Shown: positions 1 to 64,000 of the stretch, piece after piece
Position numbering within the stretch: the first letter of the stretch is position 1
Layout: each line of letters begins with the position of its first letter
Assembly (NCBI GenBank): GCA_977016875.1
Contig: CDRNST010000323.1
Location: 434,001 to 498,000, forward strand
Source: Pavona decussata
Lineage: Eukaryota
Length of the DNA: 64,000 nucleotides
Reading direction: 5' to 3'
Made by a program: the position numbers and the translations under genes
Notes under the pieces: model-generated
The model's database searches: none
What the model was told of the DNA's origin: nothing
Seen by the model: the letters and a program-made list of their open reading frames with translations, nothing else

Positions 1-674
1 TCCAAAGCTTCCCTTGATATCCCACTCAATAACTTCTGTTATTTAATTCGCAGTTAACACATCAGTTATTCGTAGTAAGAGGTGAAGTTCATCAACAATT
101 ATGTGATCTAATTCAATGCCCAGAAGTGGTTCGTTACAGCGGCCATAATTATCGGCTGATGTTTGGGACATTTCTTTCATTTCCAATAAAGACCTTGAAA
201 GTGGCTCAGAATTAAAATTAACTAAAATGTTTATCTGTTTTCCATCTATTATCCTTGTGGATTTTACACCATGCACATGCATAGTTAGTTGTTGCTCCAT
301 TTGTAATCACCACCAAGAAAAAATTCTGTTTCAATTTCAGTGTCCCTAACATTAATCTTGGCTTCAGTAATCATGCTGCTAATTTCACTGAAAATGCTTC
401 CAAATGATTCTTTTAGAGAGCTATAATCTTTTTGTCTATTAAGGATTGCTCGAGTTATGTTCCCTTTTGCTGTCATAACTTGATCGGCTGTTTGTAAAAT
501 GGAAAATGACAATAAGACGAAGCTTGAATTTCGAGTCATGCATGCTCCATCACGATTTATCTTGATTTCAGTTTTTTCAGTTGTGGGGTTTTCTCTCAGG
601 TACTCTTGGACATGTTCCTTGATAAGGTACAGCATTAACTTTTGCCCCAGGTGCCTTTCCTGGTAGGCTGTCAA
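1..674 (-). pseudogene. Transib/RAG1-core-like (or Chapaev-related) DDE transposase fragment
   Basis: ORFs 285-674 and 43-300 join across a frameshift: IKINRDGA...[46 protein letters not shown]. These match the DG, GDYK, CxxC and LH motifs of RAG1/Transib-like cores. Runs toward the left window edge. Confidence 0.65.
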
Positions 675-727
675 TGTGGCATAGCTTGTTCAAATTGGTT
701 CAACATTGCTGAATTAAATAAGACTTT

Positions 728-812
728 GGGCGCTTTGTCTCCCCAATGTTTTGAGAGTGGCACTTCTTGCATTGGATTAAGTAGATGAGGTTTTTGGAAT
801 GGCAAGATATGT
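728..812 (-). mobile_element. Penelope-like element GIY-YIG endonuclease fragment
   Basis: Manual translation: HISCHSKNLIYLIQCKKCHSQNIGETKR. Confidence 0.55.
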
Positions 813-817
813 AGTCA

Positions 818-4470: not shown

Positions 4471-7400
4471 GTTTCCTTAGGTCATAATCCTACGAAAAGA
4501 AAAAGCAAACATGTCTTTTATGCATCTTTCGTGTGTGTTTCTCTTCTGATTTTCTTGTTTCAGTACATTCTTTTTGCTCTTTTCAGTACTACTGCGGACT
4601 TTTAGCAAGGTCAGGTTACCTACCCATTCGTCTTGAAAGGCTTGTGTCACATGTTCCTGTGATGGTGATGCCTGTGCTGCTTGTGTAACACGTTTTTGTG
4701 GTGCTGAAATTGAAATAGACATGACGTTAACAATCAATTAATCAATCACTTTTTTCTCACTGTGGCATGATATACCTTTTCCTGTTAAAGAGGATCTTGG
4801 CTTTGCGTGGCTGGCGAGAAATGAAAATCGCCAAAAGGGTTAAGATGAGGAGATTAATAAATACTACTCGTTGCTGGATTAATTAAAATGAGATGCTGTT
4901 CTGGATGGTTGGGACATACCTCTTTCCTATATACACTATTCAAGGTCATTTACGTCTCATTCTTGTCATTGTTTTGCACTCCATATTTTTAAATTTCTGA
5001 AAGTCAATGCACAGTTTCTATATGGTGATACCATTCAAGTTCATAACCATTTAAGGTCTAGATTGTTCTTTGATATAATTAGTCGTAAAAACCAATTTGT
5101 AAAGTTATATTGCAAACCATCCCAAATCCCAAAACCCCTTACAGCTACAGGGGCAAATAAATGTCTTATAAAGTAAACAAACACGCCTTTACTGTAGAAC
5201 TTTTCTGTACTTTCGACCGTTTATTTTTCTCTTCGCTCTACAAAACAAAGCTGGGAAACCCATCACCACAGTGGATCACATTCATTGCACCGCAAAGGAG
5301 TACTGTTTCAGATTGGCGCAAAATCAGGCATATTACCTTGTTTTTTTAACCCTTCCCTGTCATCCTTGTCCTTTCCGCCACTGTTGTCGATGTCACACTG
5401 CTGCCGCCTCTTCTTTCCACACTCAGAGACTTAAAATAGTGGGGAAAAAACAATAACCACAACAGTTAAGATTTTCAGGCCATTTATGATAAATAAACAA
5501 ATAAAAATTGTTATTGAGGGCTTTAACTTTCCATGGAATTATTCACCCCTTGCTGTCCAAGATTGTAGAGAATATTACATTATCAGTAAATGAAAATTTT
5601 ATGCTTTCGTTTAAAAATGGAAGTTAAATGCTTGAATGATTAAATTTGCAAAATATATAATTTTTTTCACAGCATCATAGTAACTTAATGGTGGGTTTAA
5701 GATGGCCTACTTCATTGATTTCAACCTCACTCATTGCTCTTCCTCATTCAGCAAAAAATTGTGGAATAGGAAGAAATCTTGTGCAATACCTCTAAAGTAG
5801 ACGACAGCTCATCAGATTCACTTGAATCCTCTGCTCGAGAGGTCTGCTTTTCCTCTGTGATGGATTTAGCCTGAACAACGAAGGCATTGAATTCTGGATG
5901 AGTTTTATTATACACTGTATCGACGTTCATAAATGTTATTTGTCAAACAGTTGGTCTGATTATAGGCAACCTTTGAAAGAGAAAAACGGCCACACTCGAA
6001 CTTAATACTCAGAGGTGAATTACTTTTCGTGATCACATACTCATGTAAGCTCTCGAAAATATTCTGGGTCATTTATTCATTGCCTCTCCTTATAGTTGTT
6101 AACTGGTCATCACAGAACAACTTCTTTTACCTTAGCGAACTCTGACAGAGGGACATCGTCTTCTGATTCAGCAGCACTGGATTCGTCTGAAGCTGATGAA
6201 GCCTGTGGAAAAAAAAGGAAAAAGATATACAACTTGTGGATTAATTAAAAATTTAGTACTAAGAATTCAACCGATAATGTGAGAGGCGTAACCATTTCAT
6301 ATGAACAAACTGCCAGCAATTTATGAAAGTGAAAGTTTAACTTCTTTCCTACTAAACATTTAAACGTTATACATGATGCGAATTGCTTAAGGACGTATCA
6401 TGGTAAGCTTTGAAACTCTCCTCTAGAAAACTCTCGCTTAATGCGTTATTTTCAGCTTGAAGGTCATCGACGTCCGCTCTAAACTGTCTGAATTCCTGAG
6501 GTCAGAAAAGACAGAGTGAAACGAATAAAGAAGATTATTATAATTTAGTTTCAACAATATTATTACTAAAAACTGTAAACAATCTACATTTCAATAATGG
6601 TAGTGGTAGTGAGGTATTAAGTATCCTTTCTTTCATCATACGCTTATGAAAATAGTTTGCCACAAGAAAGGTTCCGACAGTAAGATGACCAAACAAAGTT
6701 TATTGAAGCGAAGCGGTAGAGACTTTAACAATGCTTGGAAGTGAAGTGATGTGTAGCAAAGTGATAAGAAAGTCTTTTCCAAAAACAAGAAGTAGATAAT
6801 GAGATAAAAACTATAAGTAGACTTACAAGTATAAGTAGCTAAACTTACAAACTCAAGAAACAAACGAAAAACTTCATTTATCCCATACAAAAGGCAGTAA
6901 AAACGGTAGCATGCACAAAGTTATGACTTACTTCCGTGTCTACATTGGGGATTTACACTGTTTAACTTGAGCGTTAGTCTGAACTGATTTGATCTTTACA
7001 CGATGACACGTTGACTGAAACTTGGCATTTTCCTTTAACATGTTTGAGGAACGATCTGGAGAACTTTTTCTGTCTCTTGTAGAATCCTTCCATTCTCTTT
7101 TAGAAACTTTGTCAAAGCCTGAATGGTTGCGGCAGCGGTCTCCTAGTAATTCAAGAGCAGTTTTAAAACAGTGTTAGACTTTTTGTCTTAAGTAAGTGCA
7201 TCTTAAAAGTTGTTTAGGGTAGGGGAATGGATTTGTGAACTCTACCTCTTGTTGAGCCTGTTGTCGCAATAGTTTAACTGCTTGCATGAGTTGGACAATC
7301 ATGGGATGTATCTGGGCCTCATCTATGTCCAGTCTTGATGTGGCAATTAAATACATCATATACTCCTGGGTAGCAGTGGCTTGTTCCAAATACTCCTTGG

Positions 7401-7578
7401 CTTGCTTCTCATGTTTATGAGCTTCTCTCAAAGTTTGCAAGTGAGTGTCAATATTTGCATCATTAGGATCTGCCTCAGTTTTAGCAAGCTTGGCAATTAA
7501 TCTTTCATCCATTTCACTACATTCATTTTCGAAAAGGTCATAGAACTTGAGAAACAAGCCAAGGCTTATGTGAAGTCA

Positions 7579-7832
7579 TGTGGAGAACCCAAGAACACCA
7601 CACTTTCACAATTTCACAGTAGAATTTATTTGGAGATTCGAATAAAGATCACACTACCCAAAGTCACAAAAATCGGTCAACTAACTGAGCAGGAATGTAC
7701 ACAACATCTTATCTCTCCCACAGAGCTTGCACAAACAATTATTCATTGGCTAAAATCTAAATCTACGTAATTCGATACACGGTGTTGAAAAGTAATCAGA
7801 CAGTTCGTAACACAATCACTTAGTTTCCGACA
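7579..7832 (-). repeat. 3' LTR of BEL/Pao element 1
   Basis: TGTCGGAAAC...GGTTCTCCACA on the minus strand; near-identical to 12614-12866. Confidence 0.95.
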
Positions 7833-10800
7833 CACACTCCCCCATGTGATTCCTACAAAGGATCACATGCCTAAGGAAACTGATTAATAATACTAGAATG
7901 ATAATGCTAACAATCTCGAACAACAACGAAATAACAAAAGGAAAAACTAGCCACACAGTTCAAGTTCAACTCTAAAGTCACGTTCAGTGTTCAATCGCTC
8001 ATAGGTTGTTGTTAGAGTTCCACTTGTGCCTCGTCCTGAATGCGCAATCGAGCAGCAACTGCAGCGTCACGCCTGGGCCTTTAGGAGGGGGCCTCAGGAT
8101 TTAACTTCGCTGGTTCTGCGGCCCGTCTTTCTCTGTCACAGGATAATTCAAGAGGGTAGAAGTGCTGGATTGGTCTCTCCAAGAAAGCTTTTCCGGCACG
8201 TAACCTTGCACTGCAAACAAGACCGTCACAACCGTTGAACAGCTTAACTACCACTCCCGCCGTCCACTTTCCTCGATTTCGTTCCTCTTACCGAATGAGA
8301 ACAACATCTCCTTCGTTCAAGGATGTTGGCTTGCCTTCCCTGTTACAGCGATGACGCTCCCTAAGAGCAGCCAGGTACTCACGGGTCCAGCGTTTCAATA
8401 ACGCATCTTTACAGGACCTCAGGTACTTAGCTCGCTTCCGCAGGTCCGCGTTTTCCTCTCGCCAATGCTGTTGCTCAGGTAGCCGGTTGGTTCGCTGGAA
8501 CAGGAAAGATGCTGGAGTGAGCATCAAGAACTGGACGTCATCTTCGACGTAAGAAAGGGAACTGCGGTTAAGTTGTGTTTTGACTTCGAGGACCACCTCA
8601 CACAGCTTTGGCCAAGTCAACATTCCTCCTACAATCGTCTTATAGAAAGACTGTTTGAAGAGACCAATCAGTCGCTCAAATTGGCCTCCCCACCAAGGCG
8701 CCCGACTCAGGTTGAATTTCCAGTGGATCTCTTCATCAGCGAGATAGCATTGGATCCGTTCGTTGCTCTGATCTGCTTCAGCCACCATGCTGCACCGATG
8801 AAAGTTCGTCCGTTGTCCGAGTAAATCTGTGAAGGTCGTCCTCTCCGGGCGATAAGGCACTTTAGGCTACACAGGAACGTCACTTTCTCCAGATTAGGTA
8901 GAACTTCCAGATGCAGGGCTCTGGTCAAGCTGCAGGCAAACAGAACCAAATACGCTTTGTCCTCAATACGTGCTGATATGCGGTATTTGATCAGGCCAAT
9001 GAAGTCCACACCGGTGACTTTAAAAGCTGTCGACCCCTCAGTTCTTTCACGGGCAATAAACTAGGAGGTGGAGCAGCATATGCTTGTGCCTGGAAACGTT
9101 TGCACCCCCAACAGCCCTTGATGATTTTCTTCACGACTTGGCGAAGGCGTGGAACCCAATGACGCTCACGGACATCAGCCATAGTGCAAGTTACGTCTCC
9201 ATGTAGAGTGCGGAGGTGTGCTCGCTGGACTAACTTCTCGGTAAACCGACAGTTGTCCGGTAGGTAGATAGGATAGTGTCCTTGGATACGTCCTCGACAC
9301 TCCAGGATGCCCTCCCCATTGCACTGAATATTCAGCTGCAGTTTATCACCGTCAAACTTGGGTGAGTTCATGGCTCTAGACTGCACTCAACGAATCCACC
9401 AGCTGGTACGAGACTCTTGCTCTGCTGCAGAATTAGGCCCGACAAACTTTGGAGTACCACTGTGGCAATTTCGCACAAACCTCACAATCCATGCAGAAAC
9501 GCGAAGGGTTCTGCGAAGGTCACGCCATTCTAGTAGCTGACACCGGGTTAAGTGGCCATGCGTCCCGATCCTGCAGCTATTCCGGTCCGTTCCACCACAG
9601 TCCTGATCCAATTACATCTTCCCCATGACTCTCGATGTCCGCTGGATTTTGGTCGGTCGGCATGTGTCTCCACTCATCAACCTCATGCTCTCTGATTTTC
9701 CGGTTACGGTTCGTGACGAACTGGCGATATTCTCCGTCTCCTTGAACCCAGTAGAGCGCAACGATACTGTCGAGCTAGCAATGAACCGATGTCACAGGAA
9801 ACCCAGTTAAAGCGCAATGTACATTGTTGACCAGGTTTACAGTCATGTGTCCTGCTACCAGCTCCAGCCTTGGAATCGTCAGTCTTTGCTTAGCCAGACG
9901 CGCCTTCGCTGTCACCAGACCTTGTGTCGTTCCAGAAGTCTGTTGTACTACTGCATAACCAGCGGCGGCCACACCACCCCCACTAGGGTCTCCGAATCCG
10001 TGAAGCTCCACAGCTTCAATGGTCTCTCGTTGTGGTGCGAGGGTTCTTCTGGTCGATGCGTTTGAGGGTAGAGTGCCTTCCCATTTCCTTCACTTCGCTG
10101 CAGGGTCATTGGGCAGAGAGGCATCCCACGCTTGCTTCAGCTCGCAGGCATCCCGATAGAGAAACTTTTCTTGCAGAGTCATGGGAGAAACTAGACCCAG
10201 AGGGTCGTAGATTCGAGTTAGCTTCCCCAAAATTCCTCTTTTTGTCGATTCTGCGTTCGCTATAGGAAATGTCACGCTCAGGGTGTCTTCAACCTTATCC
10301 CAGCCCAGTCCAAGTAGTTCGCTCCCCTCCCCTGAGGCAGAGCCCAGCTGAAGCTTGGCATATGTGTCCTTGATGTCAGTAGACTGCTCTTGAGGTTCGA
10401 GATCTAACTCAGGTGCATTAGAGTGGTTCTCGTGAAGCTGTAGATCGCGCCCGTTGTCAGCAGGTAGTTCTTCAGCATCGAACTCCAGTTCGGGTGTGTT
10501 AGAGTGCCTTTTGTAAAGCTAAAAGCCGCCATCTGAGAAGATTGATTTTGCGTCGCTCTTTAGCTCCTTGGCTTTAGGCAGAGTAGGTCCCCCAGAAATT
10601 AGGTGGTCTACATATAGACTTCGTAGAATCTCAGCTACTATGTCAGGAAGGGGATCATTCCAGCTCTCCAGGTGTTGCTCGACCACTCCCCCTAGCAGGA
10701 AAGGAGAGGGCGCTAAGCCAAACAGCGCCCTGGTAAACCTCAGTATTTGGACCTCACCTGAGTCTAAGTCCTTAAGCCAGAAGAAACGAAGTGCATCTCG

Positions 10801-12613
10801 TTTTTCCTCTCTAATCCTCACTTGTAGAAAAGCCTTTCGCATGTCACCAGTTAGAGCCACTGAGTGGAAACGGCCGCAAACTAAGACGTCCCAGAGTTTG
10901 TTCTGGAGGGCTGGTCCGGGTTCCAGGCAGTAGTTTAGAGAAGGTGACCTCTTTTCACCACGCGCAGAAGAGTCATATACCACACGGAGCTTAGTGGTCT
11001 CGGCGCTTTCCTTGATGACTGCAGGATGAGGCATGTAATACTCTCTCCCCGCTGGTTGGGAAGGAGCTAGCTCAACCACGCCCTCCTTCAGTTGATCTTT
11101 GATAATTTGGTCATACTCTTAAAGCTTTTCCACATGACGTAGTTTTGTGACTTGGGTGCGTAGACGTCGCAGACTGCCCTCCCGGTTGTAGTGTAGAGGG
11201 GGGTGATCTCCTTTCCATGGCAACCCAGTCTCATACCATCCTTCTTCCGGGTTGCATGACAGCTGCTCTCAGAACTCTTTTACACTTCTTTTTGATCGCT
11301 AGCGAGTGTGTCTGCCAAACCAAGGACATCCAGGGAGCAAAGCTTTTCATAGTCTTGGATTGCATCAACAACAAGAAATCCAGCGGACACGTCTGTTTCA
11401 ACCCCAGGAGCCATAACGGACCATCCAAAATTAGTGAGCTCTGCTACCGGCTCCTGGCGATGCCCAACACGCAGAGACATGCTTGTACGGATCTGGGCGG
11501 ACTCGTTTGCTCCCAAGATTATGTGTACAGGTAGATGTTCTTCCGCAGATTGGTCGTCTAACCAGACTCCATGTAAGTGCCAGTGCCCCTCGATGCCTTC
11601 GGCACACCGTGGATTATCCATCAACAGCAGCTCTTTGTTTGTTGATTTGCGTGACGCGCATTCAACTCAAAATCACGCTTGACTGACCAGAAGCGGAGGT
11701 CATATTCCAGAAGCTTTGTTGTTGTCACAACCAACAACGTGGCTACACGTCACGTTCCACTCTTGACCGCACGTGCGTGTGTGAGCTCTATTGACGTGGA
11801 CGACACGTAGGAGTGACTTGCCCTGCTGTCGAGAAGCGCTCTGAATTTCTGACCACCAACCTCAAAAATAACCACCGGATGCACAACAGACGATCCAACA
11901 ATGTTCGTTGTCAGACTTGGCTCGGATGACTCAACACACAACGATGTGTGGTGCCTTTTACGGCAGACACGGCATGACACTTTGCTAGGAGAGCTTATAG
12001 CTTTGTGTAGTCCCGCCGCACAGTTAAAACAAAGTTTGTTATTGGCAAGAAACGCTTTGCGCTTATCAGGCGTTGCCACTTTATCGCATTCAGATGAGCG
12101 ATGACGTTCGTCATCACAATAGACACAGATGCTAACATACTGATCTTGCGAGTGAAAGACACGCTCGCTTGTGGCAGATGAGCGTTTCGATGATCCGGAT
12201 TTGCCGCTGGATTCAGCAATGGGATTCGTGGTTGTCCACTTGCGTAGAGCCTCCAGTAATTTCGCGAAGGTCCACGATCTCCAATCGCCAATCACATGAG
12301 TGGCGAGTTCACTGCAGAGAGGATCCAATTTCTTAATGATCACATAGTACGCAACTCCTTGTACTGATTCTGATTTTGCTGAAAATTGACTTTTGAATCG
12401 CACCCAATTAATTGCAGTCCCATTGAATGGCGTTATTGTCAGCTTGGGAAGCTTTACTGCCGCAGTCTTAGCGGATATCTTGTTTTGCTTGATGACCGCT
12501 TCTAGTTTCTGATCTAGCAGCTGTTTCTCTAGCACCATTTCGCCGAGTTGTTTCTTTAGCGACATGATAAGAATATCTCGTTAAACGGTGAGTCCCGTCG
12601 GAGGTGCCAGTAG

Positions 12614-12866
12614 TGTGGAGAACCCAAGAACACCACACTTTCACAATTTCACAGTAGAATTATTCGGAGATTCAAATAAAGATCACACTTCCCAAAGTCA
12701 CAAAAATTGGTCAACTAACTGAGCAGGAATGTACACAACATCTTATCTCTTTGACAGGGCTTGCACAAACAATTATTCATTGGCTAAAATCTAAATCTAC
12801 GTAATTCAATACACGGTGTTGAAAAGTAATCAGACAGTTCGTAACACAATCACGTAGTTTCCGACC
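12614..12866 (-). repeat. 5' LTR of BEL/Pao element 1
   Basis: Direct repeat of 7579-7832 with the terminal T mutated; followed by the PBS. Confidence 0.95.
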
Positions 12867-15032: not shown

Positions 15033-15123
15033 ATTGAAGTCAATGACAGTTGCAACTAAGCAATGTTAAAATTGGTTGTTATTTGCGTGTACGAATTGTA
15101 AACAATGCAATTGTTATAGTTAC

Positions 15124-17220: not shown

Positions 17221-17329
17221 ATGTCAGTGTCTTGTATTCTTCAAATTGCCGAAGTCTTACAACTACAGTGTAATTATCCCAGGCTCTCCAAAGTGTCTTC
17301 TAGTTAGCAGCAATTTTGTCAAGATTTAG

Positions 17330-43368: not shown

Positions 43369-43578
43369 GGGTGCTTTCCATTATGCCAAAATTTCCGGAA
43401 ATTTCGGTCGAGAATTAAATGGAACGCTTCGGTCCTTGTGGAAATTTTCCGGTCAAAGTGGTCCACCTCAAAAGGTGGTCCTCTTTGACCACTGGGTCCG
43501 GTCCGACCGAAAATTGGCGTTCCATTTTCAGAAATTCTTGTTTCCAGTCCCGCTCTTCCTCACCACCCAGAAGCCAAA

Positions 43579-47831: not shown

Positions 47832-47981
47832 AATGGTCGGAAAGAGAACGCGAGAGAATGGGAACGACATTGCCCAACAATCAATTCGGTCAGACCCTGG
47901 ATCGTTCGGACGCCGTTCCATTTTACCTTAGTCAGTCCCACTGGTCTGGGACCGGTCGGTTTGGTATAATGGAAAGCACCC

Positions 47982-50380: not shown

Positions 50381-50420
50381 AAGAGATAAGTTTTGGTAGA
50401 GTTTGGTCTCGGCACCAAAA

Positions 50421-50675
50421 TGTCATGCGGGTATAAGGGTAGTAATAATAGTGTCGGTTTAGTAACGAAAGGCGAAGATAAACGGTACAGACAAGAATCA
50501 GAACTCCAACAACAATCAGAAAATGTATTCAATATGGCGACCGCATTACAAAGGTTCTTGCCATGTGACTTGCGCGCGCATACATTGTTAACAAAGATCG
50601 CATGACAGATTAGGCAACAATAACAAACAAAACAAAATAAGATGAAAGTTCAAGACAAGTCAAGTCTATTCAACA
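50421..50675 (-). repeat. 5' LTR of BEL/Pao element 2
   Basis: Near-identical to 39981-40233; PBS adjacent. Confidence 0.97.
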
Positions 50676-50825: not shown

Positions 50826-51504
50826 CTGGACCAACTTCAAGTGAATACCTAAAAAAATTTCCAGCTGATGCTTGACGCAAGTATCCCCTGCAGTGCCTGA
50901 TGACGCCTTGCCAAAGAGTAAGTGGTGTTTTTGAAGTTATTGATTTTGTCAACAAGCTTTTTGAAATTATTGTGCTTTGCTTCAAGCCTCATCACCCAGT
51001 TCCTGACCAGTGGTCCTCTTCTGAAACACGAAGGCAAGTTTTACATGTAGTTGTACATAGACTGAAATCAGGTGACATGTCTTAAGGAACTTACTATTAA
51101 CAGTAATCAGAAGAAATCAATCCAAAAGTTAATAGTGTTAATAAGTTATTAAATGAAATTTATATCAAACAAAAAAGTGGGTATAATGGCAATCACCATT
51201 GCACACTTGTGAAAAATCATGTACAAGATGCACGACTGGCAATAAAAAGGCTTCATGTTTGGGTAATGAACCATGTTGTGGTGCTTTGGAATCAATGACC
51301 TAGTATGTAGCTCTTTGAATGCACCAAGGTATTGTTCAACAAGAACTGCCAGGTATGCTGCCAGCTGAGTGCTTGTCACTTGTGCAAATACAACGTCTTC
51401 AATTTTAAGGAGACAGAGAAAATTCTCCCATTGATCATCACCTTCTGGAATCAAGTCACCACTGAGAAGTGGGAACATTCTGGCCAGGCACCACATCTGT
51501 GCAG
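50826..51504 (-). pseudogene. CACTA/EnSpm-like transposase exons
   Basis: AQMWCLARMFPLL.GDLIPEGD..WE.FL.LL.I...IPKHHNMVHYP; GPLVRNWVMRLEAKH..FK.....NFKN...SLA.RHQ. BEL element 2 sits in the following intron. Confidence 0.85.
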
Positions 51505-51634
51505 CTAATATAAATAAGATATAATAAACTTATAGCATACCACACTTGGCTCTCGCAGTGGAAGGGCAATCCATATGAAATTAAAGTTATCACTAAACGA
51601 AAGTTAGGATTCGCACGTGTGGGCACTATAACTA

Positions 51635-52432
51635 TCAACTACATATTAAAGAGGCCAGTGATGCCATTAGTCCTGTTGTTGTTGGTCTCCTTGTGGGGTT
51701 GGCATCCAAGCATTTTTGAGCGTCGGCGAGTAACATTGGAATTTCTTGCTTTGTTGCTACTCCACACAGGATTTTGCCAAGGGAATAAACATCACTGGCT
51801 TTGCTGTAGCAGTGGGAGCCTTTCAAAACTTCAGGAGCAATGTGAGCAAAGTGAAAAGTGTACTTCTTCGCTAGAGGAAATGCACTGTCACAGGCTTTTC
51901 CAAAGTCGATTATGTGGCCATGTTTATCAGTAACAAGAACATTGTTTGATTTTAAATCACAATGAAGAAAGCCTTTGGAGTAGATAAGTGCAAGAGCATC
52001 TGTGATATCACGAGAAATGATCAGCCAGTCTTTTTTTGTTAGTGAACTTTTAAGTTTTTGTAATATTTAATTGGCTTCCTCTCAATACAATAGTTTACAG
52101 ACTGTTACAGATGTATTGTTTTCCCCTTTGAACTCCATGACTAGTGATATAGGCTCTCTTTCAACCTGGATACCTGTTATTGCAGGAATGTTTTTGTGCG
52201 TAAGAGCCTGCATGATATGTGCCTCCTTTACCATCTCCTTAGTGTTTTGCATCAGAGATTGTTTTTCTACCACCTGTATCTTTAATTGTGTGAATGTTTT
52301 TAAAACGCACCTGCCATATGATCCCTGTCCTAGAATTAATTCCTTTTCGTTGATTGGGTGAAGCTCAGATAGATCAATTAAATTGACAGTGGGGAATTTA
52401 GATGGTCCTGATTTTGTATTCTGGTGTCTAAT
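51635..52432 (-). pseudogene. Protein kinase domain (TKL/Ser-Thr-like), single exon, with in-frame stops
   Basis: LGQGSYG, VVEK, KEAHIM..L.H.NIP, LVMEF, FLHCDLKSNNVL, IDFGKAC, HIAPEVL, SDVYSLG, C...P..RP. Confidence 0.9.
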
Positions 52433-54969
52433 CTGGAATAAAGCAATAATTATTTTGTCATAAACAAAGAATCAAGATCACCTTTAAAGTGAAGCAAATC
52501 AGCTTGGTAAAGATGCACTTGCTAGATTTTGTCATAAACAGTTATTGGTGAACTCTATACTCTTCAAATAGTAATAGAGTCAAATCAGTGCCTTCTTCAA
52601 GTCTCTCCTTGATTCTCATGTATCCCAACCGACTCTAAATAGTCTATGCAGTTTCATTTCCCTGGTATTTATTGATGCCCATGGGTGATAATAAAAATAT
52701 TTTTTAGTGTAAAATTGAAAGTCTTACAAAAGATATCAGTAGTCTGAAGTGTTAGACCCTTTGTTGCCCTGCCCCCTGAGGGCACTACTGAGAGAGATGC
52801 CCAAAGAGGGTAGGGCAAGAAAGAATCCAACAATTTACACTGACAAATTATTCACATTCATAACCTTATGAAAGGGGACATGCTCAAAGTCCAAAGACTT
52901 TTCAATTGAAAGCCATGACCTATCTGTCTGGCATATAAAAAAAATGAAGCCATGAAAATATCAGCAAATTGCCCGTTTCTGTGTTTATAATCTCTGTATG
53001 GTCCTTCATAATGGTTTCTGAGCTGTTCTTGTGTCGAAATATATTCAGAATTTGGCAATTTTGATAAAAAAGAGGGGATGTTGTGCATTATGCCTTGAAA
53101 TTCAATAAATTTCGTCATAAAAAGTGGAATTTTTAGGGCCGCATTCCTCGCCCCACTCCGTATCCCATTCCCCCCCCCCCCCCCTCAGCCCCAATAAATG
53201 TTTTGACTCCAACCCCCGGGGAACTTTCTACATAGGGCAGAATGCTGTGACATTCATTAACTATTCATGATCAGCGAAGCGGAAATACGCGCTCTGAAAA
53301 GCCCCGAATAAGAGAAGAAAGGGCGAAAATTGGCCCGGTAGCGTTGATAAACTCGATTTCATACTTTCTTGAACGATTTACCTAAAAACCTACGCGCGGT
53401 ATTTTGAAGACAAATGTTGTAACTATGTTTTAAGACTAAAATAAAGAAGATTGATTAAGTGGAAGGGCTGTCCTTTTGCACTTGAAAATAAGGGAAAATT
53501 GGCCTTCTTTTGTATGGAGGCCGTTTTCAAAAGCAAGTTTCTAAAAAAGCATACTGATTTTAGAAAACCTACGCACGGTTTATGGAAAATTGATCTTTTC
53601 TTGACAAGAATCTGTTTAAAGTTTACAAATTGGTCATCGGGAACCACTGTCCTTTTAAGTTTGAAAACTCTCGTTTGAAAATGGCGCGTCTTGAGCGAGT
53701 GTGCTATTGTTTTAAGCCTTCGACTGAATAACTATGGTTGCCAAGACTAAATAATTACTTATTCATAAAACCATTCAGTCGGAAAATCATTTACAATTGC
53801 CGCGCATTTTAAAACCGAGTTTACCAGCTGGTTCATTCAAACAGCCGATCAGATCGCGCAAAAAATACAAACATGGACAACGTCAGTGATCGGGAGCTCT
53901 TTTCAGACATTTTCATAACTCGATCGATTGCAAACACGTATCCACTACTTTTAAAAGAAAAGCGAACGGACATTACAGTAAATATGGTCTTCAATGCTTC
54001 GCCATCTTGTTTAACAAATATGCACATGATCATAGTCTAACCACACTGGCCTTTGGTGCTGGCTGGCTCAGGTTGTTTTGGCGGGAACACTGGTTGGTGA
54101 ATGAGACAGAAGTGACTACTTTATTTTATGAGTGGTTGAAGTTGGATTGAACAAAATATTAAAACTGGGTGTATAAAACACAGTTTAAAAGATTAACTCC
54201 AACGTTGAGCTTGATAATCGACCGTTCGGTACCGGAAAGATTGGTGTTCGCTTGGGTTCGATTACTGAACAATTCGATTGGATTCGCCGAGATCAAATCG
54301 ACTATCAGGATAACGATCGCTACATAAGCTGACAAATAATGTCTCCAGCGATTGTGAGTTCGTGCATGTCGCAACTGTCGTTAAATTACCAGCTGTTTTG
54401 GTAACAGGTAAGTCACAAAGATCCGAAAACAGAATCGAAAGAGTTCTTTATACTTCTTGGTCGCTTTCCGCGCGCGCAAATTGCATACAGCAAAATAACG
54501 AATTTATTTACAGCACTATAAAATACGCTTTGTTTCTAGTGTTGGGGTCTTAAGTTCACTTTCGACGTAACGAAAGGGAAAACTTATAATTATACATCGG
54601 TGTGCGAATCAGTCGCGGAACAAACGAGAAAACAAAAGTGGGCTGAGTTTATTCAAAGCGGTTTGTGGTCATCGAAACAAAGGGTAACAATAGTGCACTG
54701 GATGCATTGTTTAGTTCGCTTCCTCCATCAGACAAATGAGCATTACCGCGCGTTCATAACAACCAATGAATAAGCTCCTTTTGGGCCGCTATGAATAATA
54801 ACAAGCGTCATGGCAGACCTATATAACTGGAAGTAAATGTCACAAGAACAATGGCCATTCTACGCGATGAGACTACACGATAAACTAGTCATGTTTACGC
54901 ATGTCTTTCTCTTACAAACTGCTCTTCTACGATGCCTATTTTCTTCTATATTTGCACCAAGAGAGCCTT

Positions 54970-55200
54970 ACCCTGTTTTTTGTCCAGGCTCCTGTTATTC
55001 TGTTCGGCAAATGCTTTCCATTTGTCATAGTGAATTCGCGCCAATTCTTTGGCACGAGAATGCGCATCTCTTTCTTTCTGTGTTCGAATTTCTGTGTTCT
55101 CCCTTTCCATAGCAGTCCTTGACAGCCGTTTGCTTTTTCTTCTTTCGTTTCGTATCCTGCGTTTTTCCTCGATTGAATTTTCTCGAGACTTACGTGGCAT
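54970..55200 (-). pseudogene. Basic coiled-coil exon, possible 5' exon of the downstream kinase
   Basis: MPRKSRENSIEEKRRIRNERRK...ARIHYDKWK followed by a GTAAGG donor; phase does not match the kinase acceptor directly. Confidence 0.35.
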
Positions 55201-55614
55201 GATCTGGCTGTTTCGGAAGCGCACGGTTTCTCTCGATCCCGCGATTGCCACCAGATTACCTGTGGCAGTGCGTATCTCCGCGTTTCCATACATCGCTATA
55301 CCAAATGCGAATGGCAGCGGCTTATCGCAAAACATTAAAACGAGAAACATTAACAGGAAAAGCTTTGTTCGCTTTGAATATTAATGTACAACTAGATCTA
55401 CGAAGTTCCTGGTAAGTTTTAAACTATTAGCTTTATTTGGTGCAATTTACCGGCAAAAAACCTCCTAGTGTAAAGTTGTAATATAATTTGTATTTTCCAC
55501 GCGTTCCAATCTTATCCAATGATAATCACGCTTTAATAAGCTCCGGCATGCCGCAGAATTCTTTAGATCTGATTTATTTACTCATTGCTTTGGATTTCCT
55601 TCAGACCCGATTAC

Positions 55615-55819: not shown

Positions 55820-57276
55820 GTTCATTACGAGTTGATGACATGAAGCGGAAAGCATAGGTGACGAAACCTGGAGCGTAAACAGGTACTCCAGAAAAAGCTC
55901 TCACAAATCCTTAGAAAAGTCTTTTAAGGATTGATGAGAGACACCAGGAGGTACTTACAGTAAGCGTCCTTTCCGTCCTGTCATGTTTTAATGGACGTTT
56001 TATCAGTTGTGAGAACTTGGTGGTCTACACCTAAGGGACCGGTCATTTATTAGAAGGGGTGGGCTAGTGTAAATGGGGTGGGGGTCATACCTTTTTGTGC
56101 ACCTTAAAATGGGGGGCTGCATAAAATTGTGCAACCATTTCTGAGTGGCCATGTATTTTTGTGCATTCCAATTTCCGTTCCACAAAAAAGAAACAACACT
56201 GAACGAATCAACAAGTCAAATATTATTTATTATCAAAATGATGGCGTAACAGACCAACATAACACGGCGTATAGTAGTCCTTTCACATTGGAAAAATAAA
56301 CTTCATGTATTACTCAGTATTACTCAGTATCACTGTCCTCTGATTCATTGTTTGAAGAGCTGATAGAGGGCGAGTGTACAAGCTTGATCACTTATAAGCC
56401 TTCTTTCCATCATTTGCTTTAGCCAGTAAACTTTAAGGATATTAGAGCAGCCCTATTGACTTCCTTAACTGGAATCTCACCATCAGACAGTAGTTTGGAG
56501 ATTAAACCAAAATTATCTTCTTCTCGTCTATCTTTTCCCTTCTGTGCCTTTCTCTTATTTTCCTTTTTTGGACAATTTTTTTATTCAAACTTCAGAATGT
56601 GTTCACGAAACATCCTTAAAGTGCTATACAACTACAGCATCAAATTGTCAGTTCTTTTTCAACAAATCGTATCTTATGAAGTGTGCAAAGATACCACTAC
56701 TTTAAGAAGATATGTTCTCACACACCGCTGGGAGCCATGTCAAGCCGACCACCACAAGCCTGACCTTTATTCACACAATAACAATAACAGGTTCACAAAA
56801 TATACAAGTATACAATTGGAAGGTCAAAGCATGAACTCGCTAAAAATCAAACAAAATCTAAACTCGTTTAGAAGTGAGTTGAACGACTGAAAAACTCTAG
56901 GGTGGGTGGGTGGGAAGGTCAAGCAATGGCGGTCAACAAAAAACAACTGCCTGCCTTACATGTCACATGACCTTAACCCATCCCCAGGCCCCCAGCGGTG
57001 TGTGAGAAAAACATTTTCCACTTTTTTCGTTTCACTCAGCCAGTGGAAAATCACCCTTCTCACACACCGCTGGGAGCCATGTCAAGCCGACCACCGCAAC
57101 AGCATAAAGCATAGAGTAAAAAACCTAATGAAATACTACTCGAAAAAAGAAAATGAAAATTGGCAAACGGAACTTAATGTCCAAAGTCAAACAGTCTCAT
57201 AAGGACACTTGATAATGCAAAAATCAGTTTATAAGGACAAAACAGGTTCTGAGCAGCACGAGCTTAGCTGTATAAT

Positions 57277-58236
57277 TCATGAGGTTTGGTCTTGAATTGT
57301 CTTGGTAACCAGAAGCAGGGAATCCAAAGACTCCGCAATATAGTTATTCCGTGCCTTGACGCTGCGCCAACCGCCCTGCCTCTGGAACAGACGCTCAGGG
57401 ACGCCCAAAGCTGCTGCAGTTGTAGCGCCTCCAGCTCGCAGACTATGAATTCCGTACAAGCCAGGATCTAGCCCCTCCTTCCGCAGCTCGGCCTTAATAA
57501 ACTTAGCTGCCCGACTATATGACATAGGATCTCTCCTAAGCTTCACGCCCTCGTTCGTCGACGACACCCGCCTGAATAGCCACAACTTCCTGTCATGATT
57601 GCCTTCCTTCAGAAACTTCTCAACCACTGCAACCGGGCAAGGTGATGAATCACTGCGAGCTATGAAAACCCATGAGCCTTGGCGAAACTGATCATTCTTC
57701 CTCTGTGTCAGAAACATGGCAAGATGAGGATCCTCAAACTGAAGATTGCCCACAGTCAATCGACTCAGATCGTCCCAGCGAAGGAAGCCAAAGAAACCCA
57801 AAGCAAACAAAACAGCCACCTGTATATCAGACAAAGGACCCTGCTCGAGGCGAAGGATAGCGCTCTTAACATGGCTGGCTTCCAAAGGTCTCCTGCAACT
57901 TGGGGGCCTAGCAAGGATCCTTCGTGCGGCCTCCGCAGCCCCCTGCACGAGAGGATGGTCACTAGGCTGCTGATAGCCGCTCTTCTTGTGGACCCAGCTG
58001 GCTCCATAGATAGCAGAGTTAACACAGGAAACTGATCGGTCCTGCTGAATAAGGTGTACCAAATACAAGGAAAACACTGTAGGATCTGCTGGTAGGGGAG
58101 TGGCCTCACACTGGACAGCCCATGTTCGCCACGCTTCATAAGCACAGACATAAGTGCTCACTGTCTTAGGTGCTCTGTCCTGGATCAGGATTGCTGGTAG
58201 AGGCTTCGCGAGATACTTCAGCCTAGGGTGAGTCAT
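57277..58236 (-). CDS. DIRS tyrosine recombinase (319 aa, open frame)
   Basis: GFLRWDD (R), RKNDQ (K), HSLRAGGAT (HxxR), GGW, NNY (Y). Confidence 0.92.
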   Translation of the reverse strand: MTHPRLKYLAKPLPAILIQDRAPKTVSTYVCAYEAWRTWAVQCEATPLPADPTVFSLYLVHLIQQDRSVSCVNSAIYGASWVHKKSGYQQPSDHPLVQGAAEAARRILARPPSCRRPLEASHVKSAILRLEQGPLSDIQVAVLFALGFFGFLRWDDLSRLTVGNLQFEDPHLAMFLTQRKNDQFRQGSWVFIARSDSSPCPVAVVEKFLKEGNHDRKLWLFRRVSSTNEGVKLRRDPMSYSRAAKFIKAELRKEGLDPGLYGIHSLRAGGATTAAALGVPERLFQRQGGWRSVKARNNYIAESLDSLLLVTKTIQDQTS

Positions 58237-58900
58237 AGTTTCCCCACGTAACCAGTCAGATAAGTAAGCACCCTCTGGGGCAGGGCTAGAAACTGAAAAA
58301 GAAATGTACTGAGTAAAACACCACGTACATTAACACCTCCATAACACTCATTAAAACATGCCCAAACAGCAAGACTAATAAGGCTTACAAACTAGCTAAC
58401 ATATGCACACTGGCAACAAACATTAGAATGATGTTCCCCTTTGGCCAACACGGCTAGGGCTACTTTGCCAAAACAGTAAACAAAGCGCTCAAAAACTGTA
58501 CGCACATCCACATTTAGATACAGCAAGCACACACCGATAACCAGTGCTAGCAGTACCCCTTAGGCCAACACAGCTGGGGTCTACTCTGCCACAACGGCAA
58601 TAAACTGCTAGTCACAGTAGTGTTCAAACGTAGCGGCTGTCAATCCACAGCATAGTCATAAAATCCTGCTGCCTTGTCAAAACAACAAATGACCAGTTAT
58701 GAGCCACCCAATCTATCCAGCTCCCATAACGGCAATGTTGGCTGGCTTACGATCACCAGAGCAGAAAACAAGGTCGAAAACAGATTTCATCATAGTAGTT
58801 CCACCAAGAGGAATGTTCAGCAATTGCCGTCAAAACAAAGTTTGAGTGCCAGAAGGGAGAAGGAGGGAACGCCCGCTGTGAAAATGTCACTAGCTGCAGA

Positions 58901-60830
58901 TCATGATAGGAACATCCCTTCGTATGGTTGAATCTGTATGGACTGGCTAATGAAGGACTTCCAGCTCCCACTCTTCTCCACTAGAAGTGGCCACCAGCTT
59001 GCTGAACGCCACTTCGGAGCAATCAAGGTGCCATTCTCCCTTCCTGCTGACATGTGCCTCAACACGCGTGGAACCAGGTATGGAGGAGGGAAAAGCCAAT
59101 TAACTTCATGAGACCAAGAGACTGTAAAGGCATCTGCTGCCACACAACCTGGGTTATGATACCTGCTGCAGTACCTCTCCAACTGCTTTGTCTTCAGGCT
59201 AGCAAACCTATCAATGGTGTGGGGACCCCACAAGGCGTCAAGGTAATTAAAGCAAGCTGGGTCTAACATGTAGTCATTAGAATCCTCCAACCTCGACAGC
59301 TCGTCTGGTCTCGTATTTTCATCTCTGCTAACCCACTCAACTGTCAAGCGCATGCCAAGTTCCCGGCACAACCTGTAAACCACCACAGCCTCCACGTCCA
59401 GCTCCTTGATGCGGCTTCCCACTGACAAAAAAATTTCTGCATTCTTGTTATCGGTGCGATGGACACGTCTTTACCCCTGACTTCATCTGCAAAAGATTCC
59501 AGCACATGCCTGATGGCAGCCACCTCTCTAAACGTAGAACTTTTTCTACTTTCTTCACCAGACCAGCTGCCTCTGGCTACCTTACCACTCAACTGCACTG
59601 CGAAACCACCCCAGCCTTGCCCACTTGCATCTGAGTAAGTTATAACCTCCACTTTTGGACTAGGGGACCATATTGGGTAACCACCAGTGTCAAAATTTAC
59701 CCTCCAAAACTGGGCCTCAGCTTGACTCTCCTGAGATATCAAGAAAGGCCTGTCCCAGTAAGCTGTTTGACATATGTCCCTGTAGAGTGCCCTAGTCCAG
59801 AGACGCGCTACAGGGCCCAATGCAAGACCCATCGAAACCAGTGAACCAGTGATGCGTGACAAGTGACGTGCTGAAACCACAAACTTCTTAGCTGTAGTAT
59901 CATTCAACAGTTGTTTCAAAGCATCAACTCTCCTTGGCGGAACCTGGAAAGTTCCAGATCACAAATCCATTATAAAGCCCAGGAGTTCACCACATTGTAC
60001 TGGGTCCCCCTGACTCTTCTCTTCGTTGGCAACAAAGCCACTCAACAAAACGTCCCTCCTTACTTCAGCTGACAACCTGACTGCCTCACCTCAGTCCCGG
60101 TCTGCACCCGCTCCATCATCGAGATATGTAAACAATCTGAAACCTTTGCCCCTCCAGTGTTTCACGAGTGCCCTTTTGAATCTTGGTGAAGAGGTAAGGA
60201 CCAGTTGATAAGCCAAACGGAAGGACCGTGAATTTAAAAAACCTTAGCTGCCCCTTGTAGAATGAGGAAAATCCGAGGTATTTGCAATGCGGAGGAAACT
60301 TTTCGATGTGATGATAGCCACTCTTATAATCAAATTTAAAAAAACAATCATCTTTATGAAATAAGTCTGCTGCTGTGCGAATGTCATCGTACTTAAATTT
60401 TCATGACCTCAGGTACTGGTTGACATAACGCAAGTCCATGATTAGGCGGCATTTTTGTGCAGAGTTCCCCACGACACCCAGTGGGTTGCATACTGCCAAG
60501 TCCTCACTTTTTACCTCCACTACAGCGCCAGACAGCAGTAACTTTGAAATCTCAGTGCAAACAAAAACATTATCTTCAACAGCACTAGGATGGTTCCTGA
60601 AAAAGGCCTCCTGAGGAAGGGAAATAAACGGTAACCTATAGCCTTCTTGAAGGACACGCAGAACCCACCTACTAGCCCCAATGTTCTTCCAAAATGAAAT
60701 GTTCTCCCTCAATCTGCCTTTCACGACCGTGGGACAAGCAAAATCAACATTCTCGAACTTGAGATATCCATTATGTACACTCTCTTCTGGTGGGAAGTTC
60801 ACGGCATCACCGTTGACTTCCAGATGATTG
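58901..60830 (-). pseudogene. DIRS RT / RNase H / adenine-methyltransferase-like ORF, frameshifted
   Basis: GRLRENISFW, RLIMDLRYVN, FDYKSGYHH, LPFGL, YLDD, YSDASGQGWG, SSTFRE, WGPHTIDRFAS, NWLFPPP, PKWRSASWWP. Confidence 0.9.
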
Positions 60831-61640
60831 CCCATTGTTCTGGCCCCATCCAGGACCTCCACTTGCGACTGATGCATAGCAATCCCGGGCGTAATGGCCG
60901 TTTCGACCGCAGCGAAAACACAACTGCTTGGGGTTACGCGCCATATTGGACGACATTCCTGCCGTTCGGAAGTTGTGGCTTTTTTCAGCCACCACACGTT
61001 TCGGCCCATCAGTTCCTCGTTGTGGGGGCGACTTCTTCGGTTTCCACTTCGCTGCAGCTGCCTTTCGTCTCTCCTCCCTGAGTTGCTTGCTTTCTTTGAC
61101 AGCCTTTTTTATCCGCTTCTCGTTGCCAGAATCGTTAGCAAGTGGTTCGGCCGCATTACATTCCACCGTGTCCCAACCATACTTATCGGCAAGGCAAATG
61201 TGCTTATTTCATTCTAAAAGAAGTTTCTCACCTTCCTCGAGGAGCTCGGTCCTGGATTCATCATCACTCGTATTCTTAGCCCTGTCAATTTTATCCAAGA
61301 CGTCGCGATTAAGTTTGTACTGCTTCTTGTTTCCCTTGAAACAAAACTCCGGTTCCGGATCGCTCAGTTTTGCCATGTTTTCGAAGCTTCGCATCATCAA
61401 GCTCGTTCTTCAGCTTCTTTAACTCTTTGGAATACAGTTTCTGCTGCTGCAGCGGCTCCTTTGCCCAACTTGGCGGTTCCTCGGCTCAGTTTGGAGGTTC
61501 CTCACGCTCCGGGCTTTCGTGCCTTGAACCCTGACTTCATCGACTATGACCTCGCTGACTAGCGCTTTTGTTGTATGGCTCAAGTTGGCTAACCGCCCGA
61601 GAACTCCTTTTTGAACGTCTCGTGTCCTTTGACATGCTTC
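60807..61640 (-). pseudogene. DIRS gag-like ORF
   Basis: FKGNKKQYKLN...EGEKLL.E...ADKYGWDTV...PLA.DS..EKRIKKA...CFRCGRNGHYARDC. Confidence 0.8.
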
Positions 61641-63455
61641 ACTAACGATTCGTGACTAAGAAATGCAAATATTTTCGCACACTTTCGCAAAAAAGGTCAA
61701 GCAATGGCGGTCAACAAAAAACAACTGCCCGCCTAAAATGTCAAATGACCTAAACCCATCCCCAGGCCCCCAGCGGTGTGTGAGAAAAACATTTTCCACT
61801 TTTTTTGTTTCACTCAGCCAGTGGAAAATCACCCTTCATTTATGGACAGCCACTGTATCATTGGAGAGATGTTCCTTGAATATTAAATATTCAAGGAACA
61901 TCTCTCCAATGATACAGTGCAGCCTGTAAAGAAAATGGTGAAAGTTTTGCACTCTGCGACTTCTGAAGCACGAGAGAACAATGCTGTGAGGAGATTGAAC
62001 ATGTTGTGAGGCCATTTCCTGACAACGAAAGTGATAAGTATCATTATTTTCCTTTGTCTAAAACCCCAGCAAACAACAGGCTTGTCGATGATTGCATGCC
62101 AAGGGTACAGCTGAAAGCAGCATACGCATCAGGGCAGTGCTCCTTGGATGATCCCACCAGTATCTCGAAATTCTCAAGAGAATTTGTTCTGGCTGCGGGA
62201 TGCGTGAAAGACTATCTGGAGCATTTGACATTACTCGATCTTAAGAAAGACAAAAGAAAGTAGGAAAGACTGGCTAAAAGTCAACCAAGGCAAGCAAGAC
62301 ATACCAAGAGTATGATTGGAATCGGACGTTTAAAGATGGCTGCCTCAGAAAGCAGACAATAGCAGTTATCGATAAGTACTTGAAGCATCACGGGCTTCGT
62401 ACTGCATCAAACAAGCATGCAAAGCTAATGGAGGTGTAAAGGCACATTATTCAACAACAGATACAGGGTTTTACACAAGAAGAGGGACATCCACTCTGCA
62501 GTCGTGAAAATGAAGAGGAATACTTATCTTCTGATGATGAAAGTGTTCAAACACACTATGTCCTTGTTGAGGTTGGCTCGAGTTCAGAGGATGATGATGA
62601 GAAAGGGGATGATATTCAAATCACAGTGACAACTACTAGATCTGGGAGGATGGCGTTTCTGTAGTTGAGGGCAGGTCATCTTATTCATGCGCAGACTCCA
62701 AGGGAGGCCACATTATGTTATGCAGTGGCAAGAACAGGCCCACGAGAAATTATGTATAAGAAAATTAACATGCACCAGCCCACCCCCCCCCCCCCCCCTC
62801 CTCTGATAAATGACTGGTCCCTAAACAGGAGCCCAGTACTAGACAAGCATTATGCATACTTAGGAGACCTCATTCCACGAAAAGGCAGAAAGAAACATTC
62901 TCCTATTACGAGAACTGAGAAAGCTGTCTGCAGTCATCATTAGGCTGATTTAGCGTCATTTGAGGACGCGAGAGTGCGCGGAATAGTCTGGACGCGGGTC
63001 TATATCTACTATCTTATGGGGATCTTATGGGTATTCTTGATGCGCGCGCCGTCGTCAACTGACGTTCCCGTTCTGTTGTTAAATCTCATCACCCCGTATT
63101 ATTTGTTTCATTTTAATATTACAGCTGTGTTCTAAAATTGTTACCATTCTTTTCCAGCCAAAGTAATCCTGACCAATCGGAAGGAATCCCTTTAGCCAAT
63201 GGTATCCTTGCTGATTCGTCATCATCGCTAGAACCAATTCGCTCAACGCACGGTTCCGAAATTATTCTCCCCAGGAGCATGCTCCGTGCGCTCTTCACTC
63301 AAGAACCTATGTACATTACGCAAAAACAACGTTTCGCTTCTAAAAGAAACTTGTAGAAACTGAATGATCGATTTTACCAGTCTGCGTTTAATAGAACTGA
63401 GATATTGAAATAGGTAACGCTGAAAAAAGGAATGCCAAAAAGATTCCGAGAATAA

Positions 63456-64000
63456 AGCCTGGGTCACACTTGTAACATAAGCATAAGCATAAGAATGTTC
63501 ACACTTGTGACATAAGCATAAGAAAGGCGACATACGCAGGCGCATTGGGCTTCCAGGACAAGCGGGAAATTCGAAAAACTCTTCATACAGGCTGAGTACT
63601 CAGACAAATCATGTCAACTTACCATTCTCAATGCTGACGGCTTTGGCGACATCTTGCCAGGCTAGGTTTTTTTTCTTGTTGTCTTTAAAATCAGGTGATG
63701 CCTTGTGGTGTAAACAAGGATAAATGCGAACAGCTTCGGCTAATGGGTCGCTATTTTTTCCGAGAAATCTGTAGAAGACGCCATCTTGGAACTGCAGATC
63801 AGCCGGCAGAGATTGGGCACTATTTTCAATTATATTTCCGCTGATATCAAACAGTGCTGCCTCGTTATGCTTATGCTTATGTCGCACCGGTTTACACTTG
63901 TGATAACTTGACATGAGCATAAGGATAAGCATAAGCATAGGAAAACGAAAAAGTTTCCTTTTTCTTATGCTTATGCTTATGCTTATGTCACACCGGTTCA
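63456..64000 (-). mobile_element. Harbinger-type element end with MADF-domain exon (63620-63790) and GCATAA repeats
   Basis: TAA|AGCCTGGGTCACACTT terminus, (GCATAA)n/(TTATGC)n tracts, LAEAVRIYPCL..K....FKD..KK..AW.DVA; runs off the window. Confidence 0.7.

Follow-up and report, generated by a model that had tools for sequence, protein, structure and literature searches.

Does the strand bias of transposable elements (TEs) in this 64-kb stretch of Pavona decussata DNA (hereafter, the window) mark a unistrand piRNA cluster, or is the window an ordinary accumulation of nested insertions? A sequence-only reading had counted 20 insertions on the minus strand and four on the plus strand and had proposed a flamenco-like cluster, or the intron of a large gene, transcribed from the plus strand. 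Here the elements, their coding strand, the flanking DNA and presumed RNA runs are considered together. The minus-strand lean is genuine but is carried by fewer elements than first claimed.

Elements of the window

Poor in genes, the window is an island of transposons nested in one another and inserted at many different times. The following features were found in it.

7579–12865, minus: BEL/Pao element no. 1, a decayed LTR retrotransposon (LTRs, Pfam, tblastn)
14310–16122, minus: remnant of a Chapaev/Transib-like transposase (RAG1_imp_bd)
22012–22383, plus: exon-like piece of a repeated gene family, the sole independent plus-strand coding fragment found (homology)
27152–27938, no strand: 790-bp high-copy MITE (inverted ends of 197 bp, arms 92% alike)
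30921–31229, no strand: tandem array with a period of 21 bp, 14.8 copies (TRF)
32088–33699, minus: remnant of a CACTA (EnSpm) transposase (Transposase_21, E=4.8e-7, and DUF1258, E=1.5e-7, both on 33121–33699)
38850–39341, minus: Crypton-like fragment with a QRICH1 domain (E=1.8e-13)
39981–50675, minus: BEL/Pao element no. 2, a young full-length copy interrupted by a nested insertion (LTRs, target duplication, polyprotein match, Pfam)
43369–47981, minus (transposase): PIF/Harbinger DNA transposon inside BEL/Pao no. 2 (inverted ends, target duplication, Pfam)
51638–52471, minus: protein kinase pseudogene (Pkinase, E=1.5e-19 and 1.1e-5)
56423–61926, minus: single DIRS-like retrotransposon (order of Pfam domains, terminal repeats)
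63612–64000, minus: MADF-domain ORF, extending to 64079 in the flank (MADF_DNA_bdg, borderline at E=8.6e-5)

Terminal repeats, target duplications and elements lying within elements, by which nested TE islands are recognized, are all present. The LTRs of BEL/Pao no. 1 (7579–7831 and 12614–12865) are 95.7% identical. This element matches the BEL polyprotein P0025 in the tblastn search and contains the DUF5641, rve, Integrase_H2C2 and Peptidase_A17 domains. It sits within an older element: the segments 7187–7577 and 12867–13844 adjoin each other in a genomic copy (C49:3771113-3772572). BEL/Pao no. 2 has LTRs of 96.9% identity (39981–40233 and 50421–50675) and a 5-bp target duplication, CCTAT. 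It covers residues 3–1860 of P0025 with 96% identity and contains DUF1759, DUF1758, RVT_1, Peptidase_A17, rve and DUF5641. The coverage breaks at residue 810, between positions 43368 and 47982, where the Harbinger transposon is inserted. The latter has inverted ends of 22 bp, and its target duplication is TGC (3 bp). Its transposase (DDE_Tnp_4, E=9e-14, 45826–46209) is encoded on the minus strand, and its second gene, a Myb-like one (Myb_DNA-bind_4, E=5.6e-10, 43665–44471), on the plus strand.

The DIRS-like element belongs to a low-copy subfamily. Gag (zf-CCHC, 60810–61208), reverse transcriptase (RVT_1, 60119–60400), RNase H (RT_RNaseH, 59347–59958) and tyrosine recombinase (Phage_integrase, 57280–58329) follow each other on the minus strand, and its terminal repeats (56915–57059 and 61693–61837) are 95.9% identical. 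The recombinase was also considered as a separate Crypton; this assignment was rejected given that the four domains stand in the DIRS order between the terminal repeats. At the fragment at 38850–39341, a repeat of approximately 800 bp has copies of 90% identity elsewhere, and we take the QRICH1 domain of the fragment to indicate a Crypton. The Chapaev/Transib-like remnant consists of two N-terminal pieces, paralogous and similar to each other, with RAG1_imp_bd matches at 14691–15065 (E=5.9e-7) and 15589–16122 (E=3.4e-4). Alongside the CACTA remnant there is an ORF of 371 aa, also on the minus strand.

The MITE has dozens of copies of 96–97% identity among 5239 candidates. It is inserted into a 3.8-kb repeat (approximately 26.6–31.2 kb) that is uninterrupted in another genomic copy (C54:1187306-1191059). 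The plus-strand ORF at 30832–31305 (158 aa) was rejected as a gene, since it is generated by the 21-bp tandem array and has no Pfam match. Scans for Rfam families and tRNA genes found nothing in the window.

In agreement with the initial impression, we saw no functional host gene in the window; the kinase has two in-frame stops within its domain. It adjoins unclassified minus-strand ORFs (51152–55380) previously assigned to a second CACTA element. None of the scanned ORFs of the 52.8–55.4 kb region (52861–53184, 53426–53731, 54939–55295 and 54949–55380) has a Pfam match. A protein atlas contained no usable match for the ORFs at 24247–24870 or 54949–55380, and a PDB sequence search with three ORFs lacking a family returned nothing. 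The first ORF of the block (51152–51529) is related to the plus-strand fragment at 22012–22383, with 35% identity over 88 aa (E=2e-14) and no match at the DNA level. It has 37 short coral homologues, several of them on long ENA contigs and one from Pocillopora; none contains a Pfam domain. Proteins encoded in this locus also have exact matches in ENA, in alternative haplotype assemblies (contigs of 1.66 and 1.44 Mb).

Strand of the coding sequence

As initially noticed, the minus strand carries the great majority of the recognizable TE coding sequence. ORFs of at least 120 aa in the window comprise 7267 residues on the minus strand vs 2401 on the plus strand. A Pfam match with E≤0.01 is present in 22 of the 40 minus-strand stop-to-stop ORFs that reach 110 aa and in one of the 20 on the plus strand (Fisher p=1.6e-4, the ORFs being mutually non-independent). 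The sole plus-strand match is the Myb gene of the minus-strand Harbinger transposon itself.

When separate insertions are counted, a coding strand backed by Pfam is available for nine, and all nine are on the minus strand: two BEL/Pao elements, the Chapaev-like, CACTA, Crypton-like, Harbinger and DIRS elements, the kinase pseudogene block and the MADF ORF. One more fragment, that at 22012–22383 on the plus strand, is backed by homology alone. Hence the initial count of 20 to four is reduced to a defensible tally between 9:0 and 10:1. The two-sided p value, originally given as about 0.0015, becomes 0.004 to 0.012, weaker by as much as a factor of ten; the realistic tally is about 10:1 with p of about 0.01, for one window chosen post hoc among thousands.

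The Pfam scans took in ORFs down to 75 aa. On both strands, 62 ORFs of 75–109 aa outside the Pfam-backed elements were free of reverse transcriptase, endonuclease, THAP, Tigger and other TE domains, with the exception of a single DUF1280 match on the minus strand. Because these ORFs gave no such domains, the earlier calls of five Penelope elements and of L2, RTE, Gypsy, Tigger, THAP and Zator elements are unconfirmed.

Flanks, composition and RNA

The flanks are balanced. Of the large ORF blocks there, counted over 100 kb on each side, nine are on the minus strand and ten on the plus strand, and ORF residues in the flanking 64-kb windows are distributed by strand as 8579/8199 and 2241/2027. 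The lean begins at approximately 7 kb and continues to 64 kb, or perhaps as far as 84 kb. For ORFs of at least 95 aa it persists to approximately 84 kb (12 minus vs 3 plus). Ten right-flank ORFs at 64–75 kb have no Pfam match; therefore the extension to 84 kb is a matter of ORF counts alone. No promoter or 5’ boundary feature of the locus was identified.

The plus strand, that of the supposed transcript, is not depleted in poly(A) hexamers in the window: there are 66 AATAAA vs 57 TTTATT, and 53 ATTAAA vs 40 TTTAAT. The observed-to-expected ratio of CpG varies across the window from 0.46 to 0.83. CpG depletion is broad, extending from approximately −44 kb as far as +100 kb without tracking the co-oriented stretch. 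No consistent domain of GC or AT skew was seen. A search of sequencing runs listed none recorded as RNA or small RNA. At most 2% of words of the 16–26 kb region occur in 13 presumed RNA runs, and four presumed RNA runs contain only short repeat-derived contigs on the 32–38 kb region, with no joints and none spanning it; these observations come from Logan contigs, which miss rare transcripts.

Taken together, the RNA runs, the poly(A) hexamers and the balanced flanks do not favour a single plus-strand transcription unit. The same evidence would be compatible with a precursor that is rare or confined to the germline, and with an intron.

Origin of the strand lean

On balance, we favour the explanation that the window is an ordinary nested transposon island whose strand lean is at the chance level; we hold this with modest confidence. 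The co-orientation would then be a sampling extreme picked afterwards and not a trace left by a single plus-strand transcript. For about ten insertions, a 10:1 split has a two-sided probability near 0.01. Since the 602-Mb genome comprises approximately 9400 such windows, about ten would be expected to look like this by chance even if only one tenth were equally TE-dense. Several observations count against this explanation. Zero Pfam-backed insertions on the plus strand is still a striking run; the run mixes unrelated classes and young insertions; and the minus lean of ORFs continues into the right flank.

The next explanation, which we regard as unlikely, is a unistrand piRNA cluster. Transcription by Pol II would begin to the left of approximately 7 kb and yield a plus-strand precursor crossing the island, and antisense insertions would be kept as a source of piRNAs complementary to TE mRNAs. 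In the most far-reaching form of this idea, to which we assign the same low probability, a stony coral would have many such unistrand traps, this island among them, with all TE classes (BEL, DIRS, Crypton, CACTA, Harbinger and Chapaev) kept antisense to the precursor. Co-orientation across unrelated families, including young and probably active ones, would be consistent with this mechanism, BEL/Pao no. 2 being 96% identical to intact 1860-aa copies. The trap-like nested structure and the lack of a functional host gene in the window point in the same direction. On the other side are the absence of RNA contigs over 16–26 kb or 32–38 kb in the presumed RNA runs, the hexamers on the supposed transcript strand, the lack of an identified promoter or boundary, and a statistical signal no stronger than chance would produce in this genome. 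Counting strands by eye in a single window, out of thousands, gives no evidence for a cluster.

Flamenco and flam-like loci of Drosophila (PMC10643416) resemble the window in that they contain tens of kilobases of nested TEs, mostly in one direction, with no functional host gene inside. For flamenco, the bias is borne by Gypsy/env elements, and strand-specific piRNAs are documented together with a promoter and a precursor that is spliced (PMC10643416). Only Gypsy elements carry the bias in the flam-like clusters of Drosophila (PMC10643416), whereas in the window it extends over BEL, DIRS and Crypton elements as well as DNA transposons, and the flanks show no strand preference. Pfam revealed no Gypsy or env domain in the window, whose LTR elements are of the BEL/Pao type and whose RT_RNaseH match comes from DIRS; this counts against the cluster. 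The Gypsy/env-borne bias may be specific to Drosophila.

Anthozoan clusters share with the window the type of host. In Nematostella vectensis unistranded loci make up 402 of the 457 piRNA clusters (PMC5731801), and this dominance speaks for a cluster here. In reef corals the proTRAC clusters reported so far are few (47–107 per genome) and have a lower TE density than expected (PMC13343488), which speaks against it, the window consisting almost entirely of TEs. Both sets were defined by small-RNA reads (PMC5731801, PMC13343488), whereas the window is known from DNA sequence. If the window were a true piRNA source, it would help to show how cnidarians record transposon invasions. Orientation-selected traps would predate bilaterians, and the flamenco-like architecture would exist outside arthropods, not tied to retrovirus-like elements.

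A regional cause other than piRNA, common to many TE islands of this genome and imposing one orientation over tens of kilobases, is somewhat less probable still. Replication-fork direction and a chromatin domain are candidates. Close tyrosine-recombinase copies of the same superfamily are often co-oriented, as are three within 43 kb on one contig (C171) and pairs on two others (C37 and C90); some of these, however, look like duplications. Moreover, a consistent skew domain is lacking, and no mechanism is known that would give a shared orientation to LTR, DIRS, Crypton and cut-and-paste elements.

Antisense TE bias within introns is well established, and introns of at least 70 kb are unusual for corals. 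An intron or other long plus-strand transcription unit, from which sense TEs would be purged since they bring poly(A) and splice signals that disrupt the transcript, matches the spread of the bias over all TE classes, and the CpG ratio would fit a transcribed body that is methylated in the germline; nevertheless, we consider it improbable, given the required length of at least 70 kb, the undiminished sense-strand hexamers, the lack of identified flanking plus-strand exons, the absence of joints or spanning contigs on 32–38 kb in the RNA runs, and CpG depletion reaching well past the biased stretch.

To return to the favoured chance-level explanation, the window as it stands is a well-resolved nested transposon island. 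Like ordinary TE islands, it combines LTR pairs and target duplications, nesting, old fragments together with young copies, and spacers filled with MITEs. It is more one-sided than a typical island (approximately 10:1), yet within the genome-wide look-elsewhere correction.

Coding strand and nested elements

The window (positions 434001–498000 of C323, a 1.82-Mb contig of the 602-Mb assembly G000) contains no N, its GC content is 36–51%, and a consistent skew domain is absent. Protein matches indicate a stony-coral source. All stop-to-stop ORFs of at least 110 aa were collected (n = 66), and 60 of them were scanned with Pfam (E ≤ 0.01). Matches were obtained for 22 of 40 minus-strand vs 1 of 20 plus-strand ORFs (Fisher p = 1.6e-4, the ORFs not being independent, since several come from a single element), and ORFs of at least 120 aa comprise 7267 residues on the minus strand vs 2401 on the plus strand. 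Therefore the coding-sense transposon content is genuinely concentrated on the minus strand, as the sequence-only reading had claimed. The sole plus-strand match is the second (Myb) gene of a minus-strand PIF/Harbinger element. Element boundaries were resolved by aligning the window to itself, by reference to intact copies and from target-site duplications.

Elements of the island (window coordinates)
7579–12865, minus: BEL/Pao no. 1 (BEL1), LTR pair 95.7% identical
14.3–16.1 kb, minus: Chapaev/Transib-like remnant, Pfam match
32.1–33.7 kb, minus: CACTA transposase, Pfam match
38.85–39.34 kb, minus: Crypton-like QRICH1 fragment, Pfam match
39981–50675, minus: BEL/Pao no. 2 (BEL2), LTRs 96.9% identical, CCTAT target duplication
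43369–47981, transposase minus, Myb gene plus: PIF/Harbinger element, 22-bp inverted ends, TGC duplication
51.6–52.5 kb (51638–52471), minus: kinase pseudogene, kinase domain with two in-frame stops
56.4–61.9 kb, minus: single DIRS-like element, domain order gag–RT–RNase H–tyrosine recombinase, enclosed by 95.9% repeats
Right edge of the window, minus: MADF ORF, Pfam match

BEL1 interrupts an older repeat, the halves of which directly adjoin in another contig, C49. BEL2 shows 96% identity to polyproteins of 1831 and 1860 aa from other assemblies of the same organism, the 1860-aa ones being intact; the family is young and probably still active. The PIF/Harbinger element, with intact ends, interrupts BEL2 at residue 810 and thus landed after it. 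A multicopy repeat (~85% identity) occupies 35.6–37.7 kb.

Size and extent of the strand lean

The tally of 20 minus-strand vs 4 plus-strand elements in the sequence-only reading kept its direction and lost its count: all nine insertions with a Pfam-backed strand are on the minus strand, and a single plus-strand fragment (22012–22383) is backed by homology, at the protein level, to a minus-strand fragment (51152–51529). Five Penelope pieces, L2, RTE, Gypsy, Tigger, THAP and Zator were not reproduced, as no RT, endonuclease, THAP or pogo/Tigger domains were found on either strand in 62 ORFs of 75–109 aa outside the resolved elements, scanned strand by strand with ten rescanned singly. These calls may be relics below detectable length or misreadings. 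The "second CACTA" at 52.8–55.4 kb had support from neither Pfam nor the protein atlas. One further plus-strand ORF (30.8–31.3 kb, 158 aa) was rejected as coding, being a 21-bp tandem array.

The value of ~0.0015 in the sequence-only reading is replaced by a two-sided p of 0.004 for a 9:0 tally and 0.012 for 10:1. The nominal p overstates the strand finding, because the lean was picked out after reading. The genome contains ~9400 windows of 64 kb, and if one-tenth of them carry ten orientable insertions, ~10 equally skewed windows are expected by chance. We favor, with slightly better than even confidence, an ordinary nested transposon island with a genuine but modest strand lean.

The flanks were compared over 100 kb per side. 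In both adjacent 64-kb windows the two strands are evenly matched (8579/8199 residues on the left, 2241/2027 on the right), and large ORF blocks number 9 minus and 10 plus outside the window vs 5 of 5 minus inside. Thus the lean is local (~60–75 kb) and does not form a domain of several hundred kb. Among ORFs of at least 95 aa it continues to ~84 kb (12 vs 3); none of the ten right-flank ORFs scanned had a Pfam match.

Plus-strand transcription and known piRNA clusters

The alternative proposed from sequence, a unistrand piRNA cluster, seems to us unlikely, and the sequence-level tests neither support nor exclude it. The plus strand of the window has no shortage of poly(A) hexamers (AATAAA, 66 on plus vs 57 on minus; ATTAAA, 53 vs 40), which argues against selection to preserve the integrity of a long plus-strand Pol II transcript. 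CpG depletion (observed/expected 0.46–0.83 in the window) fails to delimit the biased stretch, since comparable values span approximately −44 kb to +100 kb.

The 16–26 kb region is contained in four sequencing runs of one study, probably of DNA, and 13 runs from this species, presumed to be RNA, contain 0–2% of its words. In four of these 13, the 32–38 kb region yielded only contigs of 31–100 nt, at 35.7–36.5 kb within the multicopy repeat, with no joints or long pieces. This near-absence is weak negative evidence, because the contigs are assembled and the RNA label is guessed.

In Nematostella 402 of 457 piRNA clusters are unistranded (PMC5731801), so such a locus is plausible in an anthozoan, and would not be new. 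Three reef corals have 47–107 clusters per genome with TE density reported below expectation (PMC13343488), which makes a pure TE island a less likely cluster a priori. In Drosophila, flam-like clusters are transcribed from a discrete promoter into a precursor that is spliced; their piRNAs are strand-specific, and their antisense bias is carried by Gypsy elements alone (PMC10643416), whereas in the window the bias extends across DNA transposons, BEL, DIRS and Crypton, and neither Gypsy nor env is present among the Pfam-scanned ORFs.

Other observations in the island and its flanks

A 790-bp MITE (27152–27938, inverted ends of 197 bp) has dozens to thousands of copies (5239 first-look candidates), so numerous at 96–97% identity as to indicate a very recent burst. 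Minus-strand ORFs at 6639–6920, 13326–13586 and 24728–24886, an 18-kb span, match a collinear minus-strand trio packed into 5.5 kb of left-flank sequence (−78.7 to −73.2 kb), which suggests that one old element in the window was stretched by later insertions, e.g. BEL1 and the Chapaev-like remnant. Kinase-domain remnants at 51638–52471 and 35191–35520 (the latter a weak match), both on the minus strand, adjoin transposase-like ORFs.

In the left flank, Polinton/Maverick-type elements encode type-B DNA polymerase and integrase, with genes in both orientations. They lie at −97 to −80 kb, where there is an rve integrase ORF as well, and at −50 to −45 kb; the length of their polymerase ORFs (1429 and 1383 aa) makes some copies look recent. 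A unit of four plus-strand ORFs in a row (373, 376, 187 and 263 aa; −20.5 to −16.1 kb, flank piece L009:1078–3869 plus upstream) lies immediately upstream of the biased stretch. One of these ORFs has a SAP domain, no PDB match was obtained, and the unit may represent either a transposon or a host gene. A plus-strand open frame of 678 aa at 111.6–113.6 kb (L015:7615–9648) has a Mab-21 C-terminal domain, is cGAS/Mab-21-like and may be a host or immune-type gene near the island. Elsewhere in the assembly, tyrosine-recombinase copies within 20–50 kb of one another are mostly co-oriented (contigs C171:1289645–1333254, C37:211334–232413 and C90:3707926–3758637); the C37 and C90 pairs resemble duplicates of one another.
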